Shown piece after piece: positions 1 to 36,200 of a stretch of 64,000 nt of DNA. Source of the stretch: Zygnema circumcarinatum SAG 698-1b (Eukaryota > Plantae > Zygnematophyceae). Positions within the stretch are counted from its first letter, which is position 1, and each line of letters begins with the position of its first letter. The position numbers and the translations under genes are program-made. The stretch is from contig CM074807.1 of NCBI GenBank assembly GCA_037447605.1, positions 248,001 through 312,000 on the forward strand, in the 5' to 3' direction. Under the pieces are notes generated by a model. The model saw nothing but the letters and a program-made list of their open reading frames with translations, did no database searches and was not told where the DNA came from.

Positions 1-369
1 GTGAACTGTGTTTTTGCCTATAATTCTTTATTTCTACTCTCCTCCCCTCCCCAGGCAGAAGAAGAAGCCTTTCAGTTTTAGAACTGCATGCAGAAGGATA
101 CATGCAGTTTTTTTTTTTTTTTTTTTGGTATTGAGTTCATTGGTTTCACATTCGCTGTGAATTTCCGTAAGTTTCCAGGAGGGTCAGTAGGTAGGACAAC
201 AGGTAGACCTTCTGCATTGCCAGGCTAAACTAGCGACACTCTTGTGAATTGTAATAGATGTAAAATCAAACATGAAAGAAATTATTCACGCCATTCACGA
301 GAGCGAAGTTTTCGGGGTCTGATGATAGTTTGGGATTTTTTCAGGGCTTTTGGCTTGACAGAATCACCA

Positions 370-570
370 TTCATTCATGGCTGTGTTCATGGACGAGGTC
401 ATAGTCATAGTCAAGGTCATGGTCATGGCTTCACTTATGAAACAAAATAATTTAAATTTCCTGTTTCACAGTACCCAAAAAGTTCACTTTCACAAAAACT
501 AAAGCACTAAGAGAAGACTAGTGCTCTGGCATAGCCTATCCTCATATAGTGAACCTCTACCTTCTTTTTG
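370..570 (+). repeat. Dispersed ~200-bp repeat; second copy inverted at 62760-62995
   Basis: TCATTCATG...GAGGTCATAGTCA..GGTCATGGCTTCACTTATG...AAGTTCACTTTCACAAAAA...AGAGAAGACTAGTGCT.TGGC...CCTCAT.TAGTGAAC aligns by eye with the reverse complement of 62760-62995. Confidence 0.8.
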
Positions 571-826
571 ATCGGCGTAAATCAAAGGAGAAGATTCAAG
601 TTCACCCTCAGAGCTACGTTAGTGAGTTTTTCCTTATTCTGTTTGAGAAGGTTTCGGAAGCCTCCTTTCCTCCATTCCCTCTCCTTCCCCAAGAAAGGTC
701 TTCGCTTTTTGCCCTCGTCAAACCTTCTCCGAAAAGAAGGATTCAGAATGCTCGACGATCTCCCTCCGGGGTGCAGCTCCTAAAAACCACTGGGAAACAC
801 TCCTTATTTCAGAAACCTTTAGACGC

Positions 827-3800
827 TCAAGCAGCAGCCAGAACCACGGGACCTGCATGGCACCATCTCCGTTGAGGGTCAGTTTTTAAAAAAATAATTG
901 ATTCATTCCTGACACCAGAGAAAGACTGAACTGTAGACATTCATTCCTTGGAAAAAAAGGCACTGGGTGGACTGCTCACGTCCTCCTGCTCCTAAAGTAT
1001 CATAAAAGCAAAGCACATGTCTAAGTAGAAAAGTACTCCCTCTCCCTCTCCCTCTCCCTCTCCCTCTCCCTCTCCCNNNNNNNNNNCTCTCCCTCTCCCT
1101 CTCTCTCTCCCTCTCTCTCTCCCTCTCTCTCCCTCTCTCCCTCTCCCTCTCCCTCTCCCTCTCCCTCTCCCTCTGAATGCTGATCAGTCTTCACATTTGA
1201 AGGTATGTCAAATGCCACATACCACATGCAATGCGGGTGCCCGAATTGCCAGTTGTGAGGCTGAGGGGAACGCCGCCTGTAGAAGCGGCCACAGCGACAT
1301 AATAAGTACTGCTTTCAAGAGGAGGACACGTCATCACATGCCATCAATTATCAGAGAAAGAAACTTTCCCAACTCCTTTAACAAACAACAGCAAGGAGGG
1401 GGCCCTGAAAGTCTCCGGTCACCCCCCCTCACCCTTTCCAAGATCATCCTCCATTGAGTGAACGACAATTCCGCGGCCCAATATGGAGTAGGCCCCCGTC
1501 AAAGAGACCTGAAGAGAAAGAAAGAAGAACAAGGAAGGGCCGTCAACACCGGAGTCTTCAAAAAGATTCATAACGATATTCCAATATTTTTCTAGAAGTA
1601 CTGAAGGTTGAACCAAAGAGAGAGCATAAAAATGCAGCTTTTGATGAGTGATTAAAATTGAATGAAAAACTAGGTAATCTCAGAACTTTAAAATCGTATA
1701 AAAAAAGGTCGCTAGGATAGAACGGACCTGCGAATCCATTATTACTGCCGACACCACACCTGCGAAAATTCGCCCAAAAAATTCAACATGTTAGAAGAAA
1801 AGATGTCATTCCAGTCAACGACTGACAGACCAACTAACAGCGCTGCTTCCTCATATACCCATTGACAGTGCCACCACCCGACAAAGGAGTTTCTAAGAAC
1901 CGGCATTCAGGTTTTTCTCATCTTTAATTCGGCATTCCCTTTGCCAAATGATAAACAAAGCAGTAACCAAGAAGCATATTATAAGCATATCATTATTGGT
2001 TTATTGGTTTATTGGTTTTATTGGTTTTATTGGTTTTATTGGTTTATTAATAAACCAAATGGTTTATTAATAAAACATTTGGTTTAAACCAATTGATTTA
2101 GTAATAAACCAAAGGCCTTAAGAAGAGTTTAAGAATGCTAAAGCTACAAAGCGCACCATTCGAGTCGGCCTCCACGTTGCCCAAGTCTCCCGCGTGGCGG
2201 ACTGTGTCCATGGGCCCTCCGTGAGTGAGTCCAAACGGGTTATAGTGCGGCCCTGCAAGAAAGGCGCAAAGTTCGGACTGTCAGCCAAACCGTAATGTGC
2301 GCGTTCCACATTCTTACTGCCTCCTTGCTGTCCCTCTTATTGCTTCGGTAGCTCCCTTCCCAACTTCCACCCCCTTTCCTTCCACCCCCCAACCGTCTCC
2401 ACTCCCCTCCACCTCTCCCCCCTACTTCCCCCCCTTTCCCCTCTCCACTCCTCTCCCCACTCCCTCTCCCCCTCTCCCCCATCCCTCTCCCCCTCTCCCC
2501 CCTCTCACTCCTCCCCCCACTCCCTCTGCCCTCCCCTCCTTCGTCCTCTCCCGTTCTTTGTTCTCTCCCCTCCTCGCCCCCTCTCCCCACCCCTCCCGTC
2601 TCCCCATCTCCCCCACCCCCACTCCCTCTCCCGTCCTTTCCCCTTCCCCCTCCTCTCCCCTCCCCTTCTCCGTCTCCCTCCTTCCCCGGCCCCCCCCCCG
2701 CTTCCCCCCACTCTCCTCCCCACTCTTCACTCCCCCTCTCACTTCCCACTCCCCCCCCTCTCCCGTCCCCCCTTCAACCCGTCCCCTCTCCTCCTCTCCC
2801 CTCCCCTCCCCTCCCCCTTCCCCCCTCCACTCACCTGCGGAGATGCAGCCGTTGCTGTAGACATCGCCGTACGTGTGCTGCGCCGAAACATTACAAAAAC
2901 AAATATAAATAAAATGAAAACATAACCATACGAATACATAAGCCATATAAAAAAGCTAGCAGATCACGGGTTCATCGAAAAAAAAAAAACAGTGAATTAA
3001 AAAAAAAAACCAAGGCAAGGCGTACTGCAATCTATGAACCCTAATTCTGCATGCGCGACAGCATCCTGAACTCTGAGGAAGAACGGAATCTTGAACTGAC
3101 CACATGGAACCCGTGCTTCCCCGCACTCAGTCCCCCGATCCATATTGTCAAAGTCGTCGGCCCTGCGGTCGAACGACACGTGTCAGTTCACTCGCTGTTC
3201 CGTTCCCGTCCAACTATGGCTCAAACAGAAAGATAAATGTAACTGGAACTGGAACAGAACGGCGATTTTGACATAACCCACCGTCGCCGGTCTGCTCGAG
3301 CGTCACGTTTCCTTCCGCACCCGCCGTCCCCTTCAGTACGGCCACGGCCTTGACCTGCGCCCGGAGGACCCGAATACAGCCAAAGGTCAGATTTTAAAGA
3401 TCGGACCTTCATTTAAAATCTATGATCAGATCATGCGAATCTCGAAAAAAAAATCGCGAGATCTAAAACATCTCCAGATTCTAGTTTGTCAATGGACCAA
3501 GGAGTGATGGGAAAAAAAAAAGATTCTGATCTCATTCTTGGGATCTGAAAGTTAACCGTCGAATCTCGAAGCATCAAAATCGTTCACTTCAAGAAGTCAA
3601 CGTTCCTCCAAACTTGCATTTTGCAAGTGCGGGTGTTTACTGCTTAACAACCAAGGACGTCCGTACAGAATGACAGTACACCACCGCGTCAGCTCGCACG
3701 TGTAAAACCCGTACACTATCGTACGCTCGGAGGTCCTCTGTCTGACTGTACGGATGACCCAAAGCCAGTTTAACGCTAAAGCGGTACCTTCAGTGCGGGA

Positions 3801-4418
3801 GGAGGTGGAGGCGACGGAGGTGGAGAAGGAAACGCCGCTGCAGAAAGTCATCCAGCCCGTCCTACATTAGTTCGTTACTTAATTACAAATTGCCACCGAG
3901 CTCTTTCATACAGCACCAACAAACCCAAATTTCGATTAAAAAATGAATTGACAATGTAGCCACAAGGTAGCAGCAGCAATGCAGTCCAATTGCGAAGGCC
4001 CCATCCCATTACCCGGCTTGAAGTAGCTCGTGGTTCCGATCTTGGCCACAGTGACCCCCCCAAAGGTGGCCTTGAAGTAGCACTTCCCCTTGGCGTTCCG
4101 CGTGAAGAGGAGACACAAGTCGTCCGCCCAGCACGCCACGGCGCAGGTCGCCACCGAGCCGTACGCCGCGGAGTAGTACCGCCCCGGCGCGTCCGTCTCC
4201 AACCTGACTTCGAACCCTGCAGCGCGCACAGCCCCCCTGGTCAGAAACTGAGCAGCAGACAGACAGACAGCCGCCATATCCTCCGGGCCCTTCTAGCGGG
4301 GACTCTACGAAGCCTCACCAGTAAGAGTGGGGTCCGACGTGGCTGCTGACACACGCGCCACGTGGCAGGTTCCCACGACTACCGCGATGGTAAGAAAGAG
4401 GGCCCGTGCAGCCGCCAT
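827..4418 (-). CDS. Secreted Cu/Zn superoxide dismutase with N-terminal signal peptide, PAN/Apple domain and Ser-Pro linker (~271 aa, 11 exons)
   Basis: Phase-consistent GT-AG exons: 4418-4319 ([25 protein letters not shown], signal peptide-like), 4216-4013 ([46 protein letters not shown]-like 4-Cys), 3837-3788 ([16 protein letters not shown]), 3354-3282 (VKAVAVLKG), 3162-3101 (KHGFHV), 2877-2835 (HTYGD..GC), 2252-2157 ([18 protein letters not shown]), 1759-1728, 1508-1433 (GRGIVVH..DDLGKG), 1276-1223 ([10 protein letters not shown]), 852-827 (stop). All Cu/Zn ligands, the disulfide Cys pair and the catalytic Arg are present. Confidence 0.9.
1037..1172. repeat. (CTCTCC)n microsatellite in the last SOD intron, containing a 10-N assembly gap (1077-1086)
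   Basis: Direct reading of the tandem CTCTCC units and the n run. Confidence 0.95.
2350..2832. repeat. C/T-rich low-complexity tract in a SOD intron
   Basis: ~480 bp almost entirely C and T; it generates the spurious G/E/R- and P/S-rich ORFs in the track. Confidence 0.9.
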
Positions 4419-4683
4419 GGCGCTCCTGTGCCTTCTCCGTCTCTTCCTTCTCCTTCTCCTATTTCTCCTCCTCTCTCCGCTTCGCTCCTCCCCCACTCCC
4501 TCCCCTGTCTTAAGAAATGGAGGCGGAGAGGCGCGAACGGGTTGCCGGAAACCACGGTGAGTCACGTCACGGGAAGCTGCCACGTCGGACGCTGAAAATA
4601 TTCCTCGGACGCGTCATCCGTCGTGGATTCGTCTCCTGCCTTGTAGAATTTTCCAAGCGTCAGCCCAACGAATAACGAATCGT

Positions 4684-5182
4684 CACGTGTCATATTTGAT
4701 CGGCCTCGCGGTACATGATTGGTGGACAGATTCGTGAAACTTTTCACGAAGCGCCGATAAAACTGTTTTTTTTTGCCTGCCCAAAGTCCAGCTCGGGGGG
4801 ACCTCGCCGTCGCGTTTTGTCGCCGAAGGAAGACGGCACTAGGCGGCCACGTGCCGCTGGACGGCCGGGTACGACAAAAAAATACGGCAACGGTTGTCAG
4901 TAGTCAGTGAACGACCGCGATGTTGCCACGTGGCAAACCGTGCCGGAGGCAGGCCCGGCGACGCCGATCGTGCGGATGCCACGCGCTGAGGACACATGTG
5001 CGCAGTTCCGTGGCCCCGAACGGTCTTGAATTTGGAAGCTTGCGAGTCTTGACCGCCGTCCGTACGGGTCGTTAGCAAGCGCCATCCGTACGTATTTGTA
5101 TTGGAGCCACGTGGGGCTTTGGCTGTAGACCACGTGGCACCTTCCGACGTGGCACTAGCCGATGTGGCACCATCCGACGTGG
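4684..5182. promoter_or_regulatory. G-box/ABRE-like motif cluster upstream of the secreted SOD
   Basis: CACGTG at 4684, 4848, 4927, 5108 and 5131; further GACGTGG at 5146 and 5176. ACGTGGC is the ABRE core. Confidence 0.45.
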
Positions 5183-5218
5183 ATGCAATCCAACCATTGC
5201 CAATGACTGCAACCCTTG

Positions 5219-6308: not shown

Positions 6309-12194
<5,886 letters not shown>

Positions 12195-13704: not shown

Positions 13705-16700
13705 ATGGGCCGCTCGGTTTTGGTCCTGAATGCAGGAAGCTCCTCTCTTAAGTGAGTTTGCATATTTCTAGTTAACCTCCATAATCGGAGCAGGAAATTC
13801 CTGGGGCAGTCCAATTTGACATGACATGCCTTGCTTGGTTACACTTTTTCATTTACTTCTTTGATAAGCATGCGATGGCAAGAGAGCCTGTCGTATTCAT
13901 GCTGCTCATGTTGAGAATGAGTATTTTCGTCTGGTCTGTTGGATGGTCGGTTTGAGTTTCTAACAAAAAAATGATGAGGAGAACTCATTAACAAGCGAGG
14001 CCTTTTGCATTGTCAGAAAAACCATTCCCGTGTTTTAGCGCATCAGCCAAGAAAGTAGATTTTGAGAGACTCTGTTCTATGGCGATCCTTCCTCTGTAGG
14101 ATGTGAAGTCTCACGAGTGCTTAGATTTTTTGCCTTTAATGAACGCAGTAGACTCATAGTTTATGTTTTGTGTTTCTCATACAAACAAAGTAAGGCTAAA
14201 AGAATGGGCTGGCTTGGATGGTCGGTGCAGGTATGCCTTATACAGCATTGGGCAACAGATGAAGCTTTCAGTTCAAGGTCTTGTGGAGCAGATCGGATCT
14301 CCAAGCAGCACTATCAAGCATACAGTCATCAATGGGGGCAAGAATACGATCACAGAGGTTAGCCTCCAAAGACTGAAAGTTGATAAAGCTGGTTCGTTTG
14401 ACTTCGTGCAACAACCAACGTAATAAAGCAGACTCAATGCGATTGATTTTCATCATAAGGCAGACTTGCATTATCTTCATTTTCGCACGTGTAGCAGTCC
14501 TGGTCAAACTTGCTTTGCCGTATTTGTTGATGCATTGATTAGTTCTAACCGAGTTTACGCATTGCCCAGATACTGAAGCGTAGCTCTTAGAATGGAGTAC
14601 CGATTGCATGTGTTGCTGTCTGCTTGTCGAAGAGAGGGAGAGGGAGAGGGAGAGTGAGAGGGAGAGGGAGAGGGAGAGGGAGTGGGAGAGGGAGAGAGGG
14701 AGAGGGAGAGGGAGAGGGAGAGGGAGAGGGAGAGGGAGAGGGAGAGGGAGGAGGGAGAGGAGAGGAGAGGGAGAGGAGAGGGAGAGGAGAGGGAGAGGAG
14801 AGGGAGAGGGAGAGGAGAGAGGGAGAGGGAGAGGGAGAGGGAGAGGAGAGGAGAGGGAGAGGGAGAGGGAGAGGGAGAGGGAGAGGGAGAGGGAGAGGGA
14901 GAGGGAGAGGGAGAGGGAGGAGGGAGAGGGAGAGGGAGAGGGAGAGGGAGAGGGAGAGGGAGAGGGAGAGGGAGAGGGAGAGGGAGAGGGAGAGGGAGAG
15001 GGAGAGGGAGAGGGAGAGGGAGAGGAGAGGGAGAGGGAGAGGGAGAGAGGGAGAGGGAGGGAGAGGGAGAGGAGAGGGAGAGGGAGAGGGAGAGGGAGAG
15101 GGAGGAGGGAGAGGGAGAGGGAGAGGGAGAGGGAGAGGGAGAGGGAGAGGGAGAGGGAGAGGGAGAGGGAGAGGGAGAGGGAGGAGGAGAGGGAGAGGGA
15201 GAGGGAGAGGGAGAGGGAGAGGGAGGAGAGGGAGAGGGAGAGGGAGAGGGAGAGGGAGAACTTAAACTTGAAATGTTTTTTGTTGACAGAGCCACCAAAT
15301 CGGCGACCATAAAGCTGCTCTCCAAAAAGTGGTGGGCCTGCTCCATATGAGCAAAGAGGAATCTAAGGCCATTGCGGCGGTGGGGCATAGAGTTGTTCAC
15401 GGAGGGGAGGCCGTGGACAGGCCCGTTCTCATCACAGAAGATCTCAAGAAAGCGGTGGAACGTGCATCCCCTTTGGCACCCCTTCACAATCCTCCCAACT
15501 TGCAGGTAAGAAGAGAAGCAGTCAAAAGTCGTGGTTTCCAACGTTTTCTTTTCTCGATAAAATGGCCGATTTTGGTTTGATGTTAAAGTGTTAGAAGGAT
15601 CGTTTGCCCATGTTTACTTATGCAGGGAATTCGGGTTGCCGAAGAGCTGTTTTCTTGCCCGCAAGTGGCAGTGTTCGATACAGCTTTTCACTCCACCATT
15701 CCAAGGAGTGCTTTTCTCTATGGCCTGCCCTACCAGCTCTATAAAGAGCTTGGAATCCGGCGCTATGGCTTCCATGGCACAAGCTATTTGTACCTTGTGA
15801 GGGAAGCTGCCAAGTTCTTAGGGAAGCCAATAGAGGAAGTGAACCTCATATGCTTGCATCTTGGTGCCGGCGCGAGTATGGCTGCGATCAAGCAGGTACT
15901 TTCTTTGATGAGTACGTTTTCCTTTCAATGAACAACCAATACATATAAGCTTATGCAAGCGATGTTATGAGTTTTGACTTATCTGGGCTCACTCAAATCG
16001 CTAGCTTGAAGGTCTGATGGCTACTCTTGTCCGCAAATTGGCCCAGAAAATTAAATAGATGAACTCCTCCGAATTCGAATTGACACCAGTGAATGAATAA
16101 ATGCCTCGTACAGCATGTGTTTCCTTCTCCCCTTTCATTTCATGTCTCCTGTTGAAAATTTGGCAGGGAAAATGCATAGACACCACAATGGGGGTAACCC
16201 CTCTGGAGGGTCTCATCATGGCGACAAGATCAGGCGACATTGATCCCGCGATTCCCAAGATTTTGGGCGACCTGCGAGGCCTGAACCCCACTGAAGTAGA
16301 CAACCTTTTGAACAAAAAGAGTGGTCTGTTCGGCATCTGCGGCGAGAAAGATATGAAGACTATAGTGGAGAAGGCTCAGGCAGGGGAGGAGCAGTGCGAG
16401 CTCGCTCTGGACGTGTTTGTTCACAGAGTACGAAAGTATCTCGGAGCGTATTTGGTGCATTTAGAGGGAAAGGTGGATGCTATTGTTTTCAGTGCAGGTA
16501 TCGGCGAAAGATCTGCCCCAGTGAGAGGCCGAATTTGTAAGGGCTTAGATGCGTTCGGCATCGTGGTCGACCCCGTTAAGAACGAGGAGTCGCGGAAGGA
16601 CGCGAGGGCCATTCAGATGGAAGGCTCCTCGACGAAAATCCTCGTGGTTCCCACCGACGAAGAGCTCTGCATTGCGCAGCAGACAGTGGAGGTGCTGCAC

Positions 16701-22364: not shown

Positions 22365-25300
22365 TTAGAGGGGAGTAAGACCCACAACGCCTGCCAGAGA
22401 GACCGTTCCATGCATAGGTCAGTTGTGAGGTGTGGCATTATGTAAAGAAGATGGACTGGCAATCATGTGGCATGTGCAGCACCTTGAAGGGGGAGTGGGG
22501 GAGGGGAGGGAGGGAGGGAGAGGGGGGAGAGGAGAGGGAAAAAGGGAGAGGCATACCGCAAGCAAGACGGCCACCAGCGTTGCCAGTTGTGGGGCTGAGC
22601 TCATGACCACCTGTACAACCACGCAATCGAGCCGCAACTATTAGACTGCTTCCAGAAAGTGCTCTCTCACTCGCTCTCCCCTTCTCCCCATATCCCTCTA
22701 TCTTTCCACCTTTTCTTGTAACATGTCACGAGAGCTACATACCCTTTCCAAGGTCATCCTCAAGCTCGTGAATCACGAAAGCGCGGCCCACCACGGAGTT
22801 GACTCCAGACAAGGGGATCTGCACACAAGACAGAATGGCACGCACAAATGAGATTCCACTTGAGCAAAAAGGTCACCGTAGATTCCAGATGAAGCTGAAT
22901 CGGAATATCGTCAGCTCTGACTTCAGACTGACCTGTGAGTCCACAATTTCTGCCTCAACGACACCTGCAACAAATGAACCACAACCAGTCATTATCAGTA
23001 GCAGGACGTGCCCAGTTCAGGAAAGTTGATCATGCTTTATCATGTGAACATTAGTGAGGAAAACATCTACATGCTATTGACAAACCAAAAGGCTGTTGCT
23101 CAAATGATTGGCAGGATAACTCAGTCCTATACCACTTCGAGAGGCATTTGTATCCAAGGTGGGACTGCTGCCACACCATTCATCCACTTGACAAGCAGAA
23201 CATAAGAATTAAGAAGCGCTCAAGCGTGGTAAGCCCATTAACGCTAAAACCAGTAGAAATCCTAATGAAAAACGCACCACTTTCGTTGGCCACCACGTTG
23301 CCCAAATCGCCAGCATGGCGCACCTCATCCCCGGGAGCACCATGAGTCAATCCATTGGGATTGAAATGAGGTCCTGCATTTCAAGCACAAATGAAAATAA
23401 GCAGCTTCTATACAGGATCCCATGTCAGGGCTTTTAAACCCTCTAATTCCCACCCTTCTCTCCAATACTGTCTGTACCTTGATAAACTCGTGAAAGATAA
23501 ATGTGTATTCGGAGGTCTAATCATTGCTGAAGGAAGAAAGGGTCAGCATTTCTAATACAGCTTGGACACAGAATGTACCAGTCGAGATGCAGCCGTTGGT
23601 GGTATCCCCAAATTGATGCTGAAGAAGACATAATAAATCGGGCAAAAAGTCAATCCGAAGAAGAAAGAATGGCGAAAACGGGCAGACATACAGAAATATT
23701 AAGATCCCTTGGTCATCCCCTTAATGGCCAGCCTAACCTTTGGATGTCACGCAGTAAACTAGAGGAACTATGAACTATTGAGCATTAGCTTCGGAAATTA
23801 AACACTATACCAAATGGTTTCACAGAGCTAGAACAAACCGAGAGAATCACCTATTTGGAAAAGCAGCATGTGAACCATTATACAGCAAAAAGGAGTAAGC
23901 CGGCGGTTAATAGTAGCTGTGATTTTACCAGATGGAATCCATGATTGCCGGGAGCAAGTCCAGAGATCTTCACGGACACCTTTGTAGGGCCTGCATTTTG
24001 GTAAAGCTATATCGTCAGACGACAGTATTTCAAATGTAACACATTACACTTCCTGAAACTGTGGGAGGCTTCAATGCTTCATCAAAATGATGGACACTAG
24101 TTGCTAATGTACAACTTTCGTCTCATAAGTGCTGATGCTACACGTACACTGCGCTCAAGGAAAGAAAGACTGGGGTAGTCTGCGTAAAAAGGAAGACTTC
24201 TTAAACACGCATAACACTTGAGATGCATGCAACCCACTCTCGAACAAGGCATTCACTGCAAATAGTAGGATAAAATTACACCAATGAGAAGAAGCTCGGA
24301 TATTGTACGTTTGCATGCATTAGAATCAACTCATGATACGGTAAAATTGGCATGATAGACGAGCTGATCAATTCTTAACACATTTTGTGCCCAGCTAGGA
24401 GGGCCGGAGAAACCGACCATCATCTTCTTGCAATAGAGTAACGACTCCCTCGACTCCCGCAGTTCCTTTCAGTACGGCGACAGCCTTCTTGGTCTCAGCA
24501 AAAACCTGCGATGGAGATTGGTGCAGACACGAAACCTATCAGAATCGCCTAAGACTGTACCAATACAAAAATAAACAAACGACAGGAATGACCAACTTCA
24601 ATAAGTTACAAATACGTTGAAGGATCTTGAACCAGAGGAAACAAAAGGAAGAAAAACGGGAGCCAATAGCTGTGCCCACGGAAACTTGCAATATTCTTTC
24701 ATTCAAACTCAGCCGTACAAACACGCAGCTACTGTCATTGAGGTTGTCGTCAAATAAATAAAAAATCAATAATATTTTCAGGTCAGTTATGAAGAATGCA
24801 AAGGGTCTGAAACATCTGAAGCAGGAAAGAACTCAAATAAACAATGCTCGTATCTCATCATAATAGCCACATTGATCAGGTCTTGCATGAAAACAGCCCG
24901 CAATACTAGCCTAAAAAACAATCTTTTTTTCTCTATCCCCTCTTCATCCTCTTTTCCCGCTCCCTCTTCCGTCTCCCTCATTCATCTCGACATAACTTCG
25001 CCTTCCTCTTCTGCAACACCCGTTGCAAATGATCTTCACTACTCACATCACGTATACAAAACAACAGTAGCTAATCCACTGACTGCTCCAAATCCTTTTC
25101 AAACCCGCTCCCATTGACACTTGTTTGGACTCAATCTTTCAGTATAAGTCTGAAAGAAAAAACATGGAAGTCAATGATTCAATATTCACAAAAAAACAGT
25201 TTGCAATATGACCTGGAAAGCAGCCTTCTTGACGACTACAGCGGGTGCGCTCATGCGCAGAACCCTGCCATTGAAAGCGCTCTCAAAGCGGGAGGCTCCT

Positions 25301-25368
25301 GCGAAGGAGGACTTAGCAGCTGCAGCAGACGCTGTCACTGAGGGGAAGGCGCAGATGGTGGCAGCCAT
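22365..25368 (-). CDS. CSD2: Chloroplastic Cu/Zn superoxide dismutase (9 exons)
   Basis: Transit exon 25368-25213 ([22 protein letters not shown]...), then 24505-24418 ([11 protein letters not shown]), 23990-23929 (NHGFHL), 23618-23579 ([10 protein letters not shown]), 23373-23278 ([14 protein letters not shown]), 22964-22933, 22818-22743 ([16 protein letters not shown]), 22610-22557 ([17 protein letters not shown]), 22390-22365 (VVGLTPL*). The sequence is typical of plastid CSD. Confidence 0.95.
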
Positions 25369-33287: not shown

Positions 33288-36200
33288 TCAACTCTCCTCT
33301 TGCCAAACGTCTGCAAACTCATCGGGCTGCCTTGGATTGGTCTGCAAGTGCTGCTTACGCCTCTGCTTTGCCTTTATCTTGGTAGCGTACTTTCCGGACT
33401 TGGCGCGCTTCTCTTGAGATCGAACCTGAAACCACGAGGAAGTAGTGTACGGCGTTAAGAAGGGCACAACGGCAACGTCCTAATTTTACACAGTGGGCGA
33501 CCTCCGTACTTCGCTTGCAATAAAAAATAGCATTCATGCAGCAACATCCTAAAGAGACCTTACTCTCCCTCCTCTCTCTCGACGAGGTCCTCTCTTTCTG
33601 TATGTCTAAATTGAGCGAAGAGGCGCTGCATACCGTATTGGGGGACACATAGAAGGGGTTTTCGTATAATGTAACTCCGCCAAAGCTTCCGCTGAAAATC
33701 TTGATGGGGTTAAGGCAAAAGCGAGGCCCTACCTGCACAAGAGAAAGAAAGCATTCCTCAATCACCTTTACTGCCTCATCACATTCACATCAAAAGCGCC
33801 AAGGTCCGTTCAACTTGATCAAACAAAGCAAAAATACAGGAGACATAAGTTACAACAGCAGACCATTCACAGAAGTCAAATGCTGGCACACAGACAAAGT
33901 GGGGATGACGGGGGAGGGGGAAAGGGGAGGTGGGGAGGGGACAGGCGACCGAGGGGAGAGAGGAAGGGGCAGGAAGGGAGAGAGGGAGGGGCAGGGAGGG
34001 AGGGAAGTAGGGAGGGAAGTAGGGAGGCAGGGAAGGAGGGAGGGAGGGAGGCAGGGAGGGATAAGGATGGCGGGAGGGGAGGGTAGGGGAGGGAGGAGGG
34101 GGGGATGGAGGGAGTCGGGGCATGTAAAGTTTGTCCAATTACAAGTGAATATGTGAAAGACCTTTCATTGATTAAGCGTAGTTTCTTCGATCTCTCACCT
34201 CCACAAGAGTCATCTTATCCATCATGACTTTGTCTAACTTTGTCGCACTTGGATTCGGTACGACAATCTGCAGGCATCGTCCAACGACCAAAACTCGAAT
34301 TTCTCAAAAAATAGATAACTGAATCTCCCCATCAATTCTACAATAATTTGGCTGTTCAAGAGTTGATTCAGACCAATGCTGGACATGGCGGGGTTAAAAG
34401 ATCAGCAAAAGAGAGCTCTTGGAGGATATGAAAATACCTGATAATTCCGGAACCAAACATGATTATCCAAATAATTCAACGCTATGACATGGTCACTGAA
34501 GGGCTTGCTCTTTCGGTGATCCTTGGGAGTGACGAAGATCTGCTCAAGGAAGGAGGGAGGAGTCAGAGAGATAGAAGTGTGAGGACAGGGGAGGGAGGGT
34601 GTAGGGGAGAGGGAGAAAGCGGAATTAAGTGGTAGCAGAAAGACAGGGACAGGGCGAGTTGAAAGAACGAGATAAGGAAAGGGATGAGAGAGATAGAGTG
34701 AGAGAAAAAGTGGGAGAGAAAAAGAGAGAGAGAATGCGAGAGAGTCATCTGAGAACCACCTGAGTGAAGAGTTCTTTGAGAAGTTGCAAGTGGGGAATTC
34801 TGTCGAAGGATGGAGAAAAGGTGAGAATGGGTCTAGATCCCTTCAGGTGATTTCCACTCAGCTTTAGTTCCGCCATCGTGTGCACTGCATTGGAAGCAGA
34901 AAATCCTAAAATAAAAAAACGGCGGTATTCATATGCCTCTCTCCTCCTTCTCCCTTCCCTTCCGTCTCCCCTACTCCATCCTTTCTATAGCCCATTTGCA
35001 GACAAATTCTGCCCGTTTTCCTCACTCGTTCACTGAAAGCTTACTTCAACTCAAAGAAACTACTCTCCACAAAAGCCCAAGCCGGGCCTTACAAAAAATT
35101 CCAAAAGGCGTTCAGTGTTAAAACTGACAAACTGATGGTGTAGGTTTAATTAGGCCTTGTCTTCAATGCACCACAATATTCATTAGAAGCTTGTACCTGC
35201 GTTCACCAGGAATTTTGCAGATGGCCCATTTGGAGCCTTAGAGAACCACATGTAAAGATCCTTTTTCTTCCGTCCCTGTTTAAGTGCTCCCACCAAACAC
35301 AAGTTCGAAAAAGACAAAGAAAGGGTCATGACTGTCCATATAATGACAAGGGTGCATCGTCAGTCTGGTCGACCGACCATATCGACAGAATTATGACTGT
35401 TGTTTGTCAAACTGTATGGACTCTTACATGAAGAGCTTTCTAGTATTCTGAAAGCCTTTGAAATTTCTTTCTACAAGCTTGTGAGGTGGCTTGGTGTGTA
35501 ACGATAGCCACGACCTATTGTGAGGGGAATGAGACATTGCGAAACCAATTGTTCGAGATTGCTGTTAAACTAAAGAGAGACAAATTGCAAAGAAGATGGG
35601 AAATTTCACCTCAAAAAATATGCAGTTAGAACAACCCTTTAGGTCAGCCATTTCGTTCAACATCTCCGCTCGATTTTCCTTTCTATTTTCCATTTTTGCA
35701 TCCTTCTTGCAGTGCGGAAGGAGAAGGATGAGGTCCTCCATAAGGTGTCGATACCTATAACGACAAAACAGCGCAGTTAGATACATGAAGCACATCGAAA
35801 TGCGATCAAATGCAAAATATTGAATGCAATGAAAGGATGACATAGGAGCCCAGGACGGAAACACCTAAGAAAGAGAGGAAATAAGGTCAATGGAGGAAGG
35901 ATCGAGTGGGAACAGTGGTGAAGGATGGAGGAGAAGGAAGCAGAGGTGAGGGGAAGAGTCGGAGAGAATGAGTTATGGGAAAGGGAGAGAGGAGGAGAGA
36001 CAAGGAGGGAAGAGAAGGGGAGAAGGAATTGAATTTTGAAATCTTTCGAGCGATAAAGTGATTTGAAATCTGAGACTTCGTCAAAGTAGGCCAGAATAAA
36101 GTTGGAAACATATCCCGTGGTAAACATGCAGCATTGGCTGTCTCAATATGTAACAAAATACACTAGATATCATCTGAGCCAATCAGTAAGTACAAAAATC

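Follow-up and report, generated by a model that had tools for sequence, protein, structure and literature searches.

A Cu/Zn superoxide dismutase gene with a PAN/Apple module and a predicted secretory leader in Zygnema circumcarinatum, derived by duplication of a chloroplast-type gene

We analysed a 64,000-nt stretch of the genome of the zygnematophyte Zygnema circumcarinatum SAG 698-1b (GenBank assembly GCA_037447605.1, contig CM074807.1, positions 248,001 to 312,000 of the forward strand), referred to below as the window; all coordinates are positions within it. Near its start lies a nuclear gene, here called PAN-SOD, that joins a predicted signal peptide, a PAN/Apple module, a Ser-Pro linker and a complete Cu/Zn superoxide dismutase (SOD) domain. 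This is a new domain combination whose origin is well documented: a second SOD gene of the chloroplastic CSD2 type, found in the same window, is the likely source of its SOD exons.

Structure of the PAN-SOD gene

Reading positions 1-5200, we assigned to PAN-SOD a coding sequence of 816 nt in 11 exons on the minus strand (4418..827), which encodes a protein of 271 aa (Table 1). An original prediction, made from the sequence of the window alone, had proposed an 11-exon open reading frame (ORF) here, and splicing of the minus strand reproduced it exactly, with GT..CAG boundaries at all ten introns. The predicted order of signal peptide, PAN/Apple module, Ser-Pro linker and complete Cu/Zn SOD was recovered in the 271-aa spliced model, as were the 204-nt phase 1-1 exon with its C-x3-C-x5-C core, to which we add a fourth Cys, and an NVT sequon, which is the sole sequon of the protein (residue 134). 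The exons have a GC content of 62.5%, reaching 72% at third codon positions (GC3), whereas most introns contain 35-49% GC, a contrast that matches the expectation for genuine coding exons.

The assembly gap within intron 10 is flanked on either side by the continuing CCCTCT/GGGAGA repeat and leaves only the length of that intron uncertain. Reading frame and exon order across the gap are sound, because exon 11 corresponds in both size and phase to the terminal exon of the CSD2-type paralogue. It places the end of the protein seven residues past the conserved Ala-Cys-Gly.

Two introns of PAN-SOD are unusual in comparison with those of the paralogue. Intron 6 (2253-2834; 582 nt) carries a purine-rich, GGGGAG-like low-complexity block and has 66% GC, while intron 7 (1760-2156) contains tandem AATAAACC-like repeats. 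Another assembly gap of 10 N, at 8358-8367, lies in the window outside the PAN-SOD gene.

Table 1. Coordinates of the PAN-SOD exons and associated features in the window.
Feature	Position	Strand	Length (nt)	Description
Exon 1	4319..4418	-	100	GCC-ATG-G start context, predicted signal peptide; phase 1 at end
Exon 2	4013..4216	-	204	Single PAN/Apple module, symmetric phase 1-1, four-Cys core
Exon 3	3788..3837	-	50	Ser-Pro linker, 17 aa; phase 1 in, phase 0 out
Exon 4	3282..3354	-	73	SOD N-terminal strand KAVAVLKGT... and NVT sequon
Exon 5	3101..3162	-	62	SOD, holds His46; size as in CSD2-type paralogue
Exon 6	2835..2877	-	43	His48, Cys57; disulfide loop one residue longer (40 nt in CSD2-type paralogue)
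Exon 7	2157..2252	-	96	His63, His71, His80, Asp83 (zinc loop)
Exon 8	1728..1759	-	32	SOD; size and phase as in CSD2-type paralogue
Exon 9	1433..1508	-	76	His120, Asp124
Exon 10	1223..1276	-	54	Electrostatic loop, Arg143, Cys146
Exon 11	827..852	-	26	Final 7 residues and stop codon; phase 1
Assembly gap	1077..1086			Within (GGGAGA)n microsatellite of intron 10 (1222..853), non-coding
5' flank	4579..5153		575	Seven GCCACGT (ABRE/G-box-like) sites; three more in exon 1
CSD2-type paralogue	22365..25368	-		Chloroplast-type, 9 exons, 209 aa, transit peptide; likely source of SOD exons

The PAN/Apple module and the SOD domain

Taken as a single 67-aa module, the product of exon 2 stays under the Pfam cutoffs, with 17.9 bits for PAN_3 (cutoff 21.1) and 13.1 bits for PAN_1 (cutoff 21.4). 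A HMMER scan of 1.84 billion cluster representatives with exon 2 returned 17 matches, the best with an E value of 8e-11. Fourteen of the 16 relatives scanned against Pfam strongly pass PAN_1 or PAN_4, the exceptions being P0005 and P0017; the seventeenth, P0006, fell outside that scan and matches a PAN-module hidden Markov model (HMM) built from an alignment of 30 modules. Four cysteines and one glycine (C24, C28, C34, C45 and G11) are invariant across these 30 modules, and the PAN-SOD module, like several homologues, lacks the outer pair of cysteines seen in six-Cys apple domains. Among solved sequences, the best match of exon 2 is the apple domain of Toxoplasma MIC4 (E 1.6e-4). The contig of another relative, P0007, was considered as a clue to the exon structure of PAN modules and proved uninformative, as it carries an unspliced ORF.

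An AlphaFold (AF2) model of the module, computed on the 30-module alignment, reached a predicted local distance difference test (pLDDT) score of 93.1 and has the one helix packed on an antiparallel sheet that characterizes the PAN/Apple fold. In a Foldseek search, nearly all of the top 50 matches to this model were PAN/Apple or HGF N-domains, with template modelling (TM) scores of about 0.8 and a probability of 1.00, the best E value being only 4e-3. They included the factor XI/prekallikrein apple domain, an Eimeria PAN module, the galactose-binding lectin SML-2 of Sarcocystis, the N-domains of plasminogen and HGF, and PDB entry 6RYX. By homology and modelled fold, exon 2 therefore encodes a PAN/Apple module. 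The PAN call of the original prediction holds on these grounds, although in Pfam the single module itself is sub-threshold. PAN modules are small folds locked by disulfides, and in other systems their ligands are glycans or proteins, among them proteins (factor XI), heparin (HGF) and galactose (SML-2, MIC4).

Residues of the SOD domain are numbered as in human SOD1, from exon-wise alignments to solved SODs. These alignments place His63, His71, His80, Asp83, His120 and Asp124, while His46 and His48 (GFHV/H, split between exons 5 and 6), Cys57, Arg143 and Cys146 can be read straight from the sequence, in agreement with the offset of exon 4. All of the copper and zinc ligands are kept, together with Arg143 and with Cys57 and Cys146, the predicted disulfide pair, so that every residue on which the original prediction had based its claim of a complete SOD is present. 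Exon 7 alone scores 33.4 bits against Pfam Sod_Cu (PF00080; cutoff 28.9), and exons 5 and 9 match the adjoining positions of the profile. Once spliced, the domain aligns end to end with the SODs that we fetched (residues 3-154 of 155, E ~1e-47).

For exons 4 and 9, the best natural single-domain matches among solved structures are spinach 1SRD and tomato chloroplastic 3HOG. An engineered tandem construct of human SOD1 heads both lists, and for exon 4 the entries 3MND and 4RVP rank between 1SRD and 3HOG, the latter still being in the top five. The domain is ~64% identical to angiosperm chloroplastic SODs and, of 60 columns conserved to 95% or more across 111 other SODs, retains 56. The substitutions that it has accumulated in the electrostatic loop and in the dimer interface hint that guidance or quaternary structure has changed, rather than that catalysis has been lost, and the enzyme is predicted to be active.

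Origin from a neighbouring chloroplast-type SOD gene

A tblastn search of the whole window with the PAN-SOD model revealed the second SOD gene, which lies 18 kb from PAN-SOD in the same orientation and had not been recognised in the original prediction; it explains where PAN-SOD came from. This CSD2-type paralogue is intact and encodes a typical transit peptide rich in Ala and Ser; its identity to the chloroplastic SODs of land plants is 71-76%. Its nine exons measure 156, 88, 62, 40, 96, 32, 76, 54 and 26 nt. The last seven (62/40/96/32/76/54/26 nt) correspond one to one, in identical phases, to those of PAN-SOD (62/43/96/32/76/54/26 nt), and in both genes the upstream exons are joined at an identical phase-0 intron. 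The two SOD domains share 63.6% identity, with a proportion of synonymous differences (pS) of 0.66, a synonymous divergence (dS) of ~1.6 and a ratio of nonsynonymous to synonymous divergence (dN/dS) of ~0.18.

A PTA-ACK gene pair sits between the two SOD genes. Pro-rich tblastn matches at 14.6-15.4 kb and 33-34 kb were rejected as CT/GA microsatellites rather than genes. Arrays of this type at 14500-15500 and 33800-34200 give Ser/Pro/Leu runs in every frame and thereby mimic extensin-like coding sequence in tblastn.

The matching exon sizes and phases, together with the level of identity and synonymous divergence, show that PAN-SOD descends from an old duplication of a plastid SOD gene and has had its targeting exon replaced. 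The chloroplastic CSD2-type transit peptide is absent from PAN-SOD, the first exon of which encodes a hydrophobic stretch of signal-peptide type, in contrast to the 52-aa Ala/Ser-rich first exon of the paralogue. We propose that a duplicate of the neighbouring gene shed the transit-peptide exon, the conserved phase-0 intron being the point of exchange, and gained three exons instead: one for the signal peptide, which ends in phase 1, a PAN/Apple exon in phase 1-1, and a Ser-Pro exon that returns the frame to phase 0. Exon 3, with phase 1 on entry and phase 0 on exit, is the adaptor needed between a phase-1 PAN module and the phase-0 SOD intron.

In a phylogenetic tree, the PAN-SOD domain lies on the green side at weak support values (76/43), its long branch preventing a firm placement, and a position inside the chloroplast-type clade was not rejected by an approximately unbiased topology test (p-AU 0.072). 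Purifying selection, averaged over PAN-SOD and its paralogue, is evident from the pairwise comparison, in which we observed no stop codons and no lost splice sites. Judged from its sequence, PAN-SOD has stayed open, spliceable and catalytically complete for much longer than a neutral copy should.

The duplication history also bears on whether the locus is one gene or two. Exons 1-3 could in principle encode a small secreted PAN protein, with the SOD exons transcribed from a promoter in intron 3 as a leaderless cytosolic SOD. Read-through at the exon 3 donor would add just three codons (...ALKVPL-stop), and intron 3 contains six ATGs, some of which could be spliced in phase 0 to exon 4, as in the mini-exons ATG-AAG/GTCCGA at 3412-3407 and ATG-CAA/GTTTGG at 3619-3614. 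However, these mini-exons would comprise merely 2-35 codons with weak donors, and the best of them leaves an intron of 52 nt, the shortest intron of the two SOD genes being twice as long. The exon phases (1, 1-1, 1-0, 0) fit exactly, like a designed join, and in the ancestral gene, too, the first exon was a separate one, joined at this phase-0 intron. Since the SOD exons themselves supply no start codon, their first Met coming after His46, His48 and His63, we regard PAN-SOD as one gene and consider two transcription units to be improbable.

We assign about the same low probability to a silent or decaying gene, that is, a duplicate with upstream exons acquired by chance that is no longer used. 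Such a gene would account for the long branch and for the change of four nearly universal residues, and also for the result that no transcript-derived PAN-SOD protein was found in the protein collections searched, which comprised the 1.84 billion representatives and the proteins of 97-310 aa in a collection of 5.8 billion. At a dS of ~1.6, however, an unconstrained copy should have lost its frame, its splice sites or its ligands, whereas all 20 splice sites, the 816-nt frame and every catalytic residue are intact; the pairwise dN/dS of 0.18 and the retention of 56 of 60 nearly invariant columns point the same way.

The 5' flank of the gene also speaks against disuse. GCCACGT occurs 18 times in the window against 4.1 expected occurrences, and ten of the 18 sites fall within 4337-5153, where some form overlapping palindromes. 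This dense cluster makes conditional expression, driven by stress or light, plausible and could explain the missing transcripts, as a cluster of ACGT-core promoter elements fits conditional expression that standard cultures would miss. Expression of PAN-SOD is presumed.

Predicted secretion and function, and comparison with known systems

The leader encoded by exon 1 consists of an n-region (MAAAR), a 12-residue hydrophobic core and a cleavage-like site, VSA/A, as judged by eye. Its Kyte-Doolittle hydropathy peaks at 2.5 (11-residue mean), compared with at most 1.65 in the Ala/Ser-rich transit peptide of the paralogue. PAN-SOD is accordingly predicted to be secreted. The linker of 17 aa had been described as extensin in the original prediction, a term that should be narrowed. 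Extensins have many Ser-Pro3-5 repeats and Tyr cross-linking motifs; because exon 3 has only two Ser-Pro runs (SPPP and SPPPPP) and no Tyr, its sequence identifies it as an extensin-like spacer and not as an extensin that can be cross-linked into the wall. Its prolines may nevertheless be hydroxylated and O-glycosylated.

Our preferred interpretation, which we consider somewhat better than an even bet, is that PAN-SOD is a secreted SOD held on the extracellular matrix by its PAN module, where it dismutates extracellular superoxide. The protein would enter the endoplasmic reticulum and lose ~25 residues, giving a secreted product of ~25 kDa in which the PAN module and the SOD domain are separated by a rigid spacer that is probably O-glycosylated. 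The PAN module would most likely hold the enzyme on a component of the wall or mucilage, and the intact Cu/Zn site would convert extracellular superoxide to H2O2 and O2. A location at the cell surface is probable, and the tethering to the wall, the kind of binding partner and a role in producing H2O2 are putative.

A secreted enzyme need not be tethered to the wall. The PAN module could serve in oligomerisation, in attachment to secreted mucilage, in the recognition of partner cells during conjugation or in the binding of microbes, or the protein could be kept in an endomembrane compartment. The structural matches of the module include protein-, heparin- and galactose-binding PAN/Apple domains alike, the linker lacks Tyr for covalent cross-linking, and the role of PAN modules on secreted fungal copper oxidases has been described as still unresolved (PMC13390370). 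We consider these possibilities unlikely, if clearly less so than a split or a silent gene, and they overlap with matrix attachment instead of excluding it.

Searches for the same architecture elsewhere returned none. No Sod_Cu domain was found in the 17 relatives of the PAN exon drawn from the 1.84 billion representatives, and none of the ~240 SOD relatives fetched matches the PAN-module HMM; the Pfam PAN profiles would miss a module of the PAN-SOD type. In metagenomes, a scan with the PAN exon gave no match, and a scan with exon 7 yielded 80 SOD loci, none of which has a PAN-like N-terminus. A SOD profile of five exon pieces on a viral SOD scaffold matched only marine relatives of that scaffold; for a second profile, on the scaffold of a eukaryotic metagenome contig, the best 120 of 7928 matches were listed, and orthologues could lie beyond these. 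Exons 4 and 8 were left out of the SOD profiles, as MAFFT misplaced both. The literature held nothing relevant on a combination of PAN and SOD or on a secreted SOD in Closterium. The claim that no protein of this architecture has been described is thus upheld among PAN relatives, fetched SODs, metagenomes and literature.

The secretory leader has a parallel within the group. Protein P0143 of Closterium sp. NIES-64 (320 aa; CANXGL010000934.1, locus L082 10001-14924) is an annotation that wrongly fuses two SOD genes lying in tandem. In the second gene, the first exon begins MAVPAVLAALLAMPLSPAAASA... and encodes a signal-peptide-like leader of 22-24 residues fused directly to the SOD, with no PAN exon. 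A secretory-type leader on a Cu/Zn SOD is therefore predicted in at least one other gene of the group, and what distinguishes PAN-SOD is the addition of the PAN module and the Ser-Pro linker rather than the leader. We also observed an atypical, extended eukaryote-like Cu/Zn SOD on metagenome contig Ga0314677_10017031 (locus L003 2-766), an unspliced ORF of 255 aa whose N-terminus is extended by a Pro-rich, hydrophobic stretch, whose electrostatic loop carries an insertion and whose C-terminus ends in a Cys-rich tail.

Several observations weigh against a secreted, active and tethered enzyme. The signal peptide was called by eye and from hydropathy alone, and the single-domain Pfam scores of the PAN module are below threshold. 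The PAN-SOD branch is very long, at 1.64 compared with only 0.16 for the paralogue. In the electrostatic loop, Glu132 is changed to Pro, Ala140 to Ser and Gly142 to Thr, and in the C-terminal strand of the dimer interface Val148 is changed to Pro and Gly150 to Val, all but Val148 being among the four nearly universal residues that have changed; these changes could reflect an altered quaternary structure or a partly relaxed constraint. No orthologue with this architecture was found in the protein and metagenome searches, although a dS of ~1.6 predicts that some should exist. There was no near-identical PAN exon among the 1.84 billion representatives, and, among proteins of 97-310 aa, the 5.8-billion collection yielded not one with as many as three 5-residue words in common with exon 6, the query being residues 1-41 of a 177-aa stop-free ORF that contains this exon.

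A wider proposal goes beyond the tethered enzyme, and we put it forward tentatively, judging it to be slightly less likely true than false. PAN-SOD would be the first streptophyte Cu/Zn SOD that is both secreted classically and parked by a binding module of its own, exon-shuffled from a plastid enzyme within a desmid-specific PAN and Ser-Pro toolkit that moves diverse enzymes to the wall, giving an extracellular system for the conversion of superoxide to H2O2. If active, the enzyme points to a regulated extracellular chemistry of reactive oxygen species in zygnematophytes. It could also provide a simple test system for the ligands of algal PAN modules.

Compared with the plant chloroplastic CSD2-type SODs, PAN-SOD has a homologous SOD domain, seven exons with identical intron positions and phases, and the same metal ligands and disulfide cysteines; it differs in having a predicted signal peptide, a PAN module and a Ser-Pro linker in place of the transit peptide. 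Relative to its own paralogue, it has a branch ~10-fold as long, changes in the electrostatic loop and in the C-terminal interface strand, and one additional residue in the disulfide loop. The pair would represent a clean, datable case of plastid-to-secretory retargeting by replacement of N-terminal exons, with only 18 kb between the donor and the derived copy.

Extracellular members of the family in other kingdoms offer partial parallels. Animal SOD3 (extracellular SOD, EC-SOD) likewise joins a signal peptide and an additional, matrix-binding part to a Cu/Zn SOD, by which the enzyme is parked in the extracellular matrix; for PAN-SOD, the signal peptide and the binding to a matrix are predicted. 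SOD3 carries a basic heparin-binding tail at its C-terminus and forms tetramers through an N-terminal helix, whereas the addition in PAN-SOD is a PAN fold at the N-terminus, joined through a Ser-Pro spacer and of independent origin. The fungal surface enzymes SOD4/5/6 are likewise secreted, surface-located members of the SOD1-fold family, a location that is predicted for PAN-SOD. These fungal enzymes are Cu-only and anchored by glycosylphosphatidylinositol (GPI), and they lack the zinc site and the electrostatic loop; PAN-SOD, by contrast with the SOD5 type, keeps all of its zinc ligands and has no GPI-type C-terminal signal, only a 7-residue tail following Cys146-Gly147. The fungal AA5 copper radical oxidases (e.g., PDB 6RYX) are secreted copper redox enzymes with one or more N-terminal PAN/Apple modules, as is predicted for PAN-SOD, but their catalytic domain is a kelch-type propeller unrelated to SOD, and the function of PAN in these oxidases is itself unresolved (PMC13390370).

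Apoplastic Cu/Zn SODs of land plants are already known from spinach, pine (hipI-SOD), pea and cotton (GhCSD3) (PMC2440947). The original prediction is to be corrected in that what is new is the secretory leader together with the binding module, and not an extracellular plant Cu/Zn SOD in itself. Cotton GhCSD1 and GhCSD3 lack signal peptides, and no binding module has been described for them (PMC2440947). PAN-SOD shares with these enzymes a streptophyte Cu/Zn SOD domain and, by prediction, a place in the wall or apoplast, and differs from them in carrying an explicit, predicted secretory leader together with a binding module. The route by which Cu/Zn SODs reach plant walls, where their activity is documented, is an old loose end, and PAN-SOD would be an explicit answer to it from the lineage sister to land plants.

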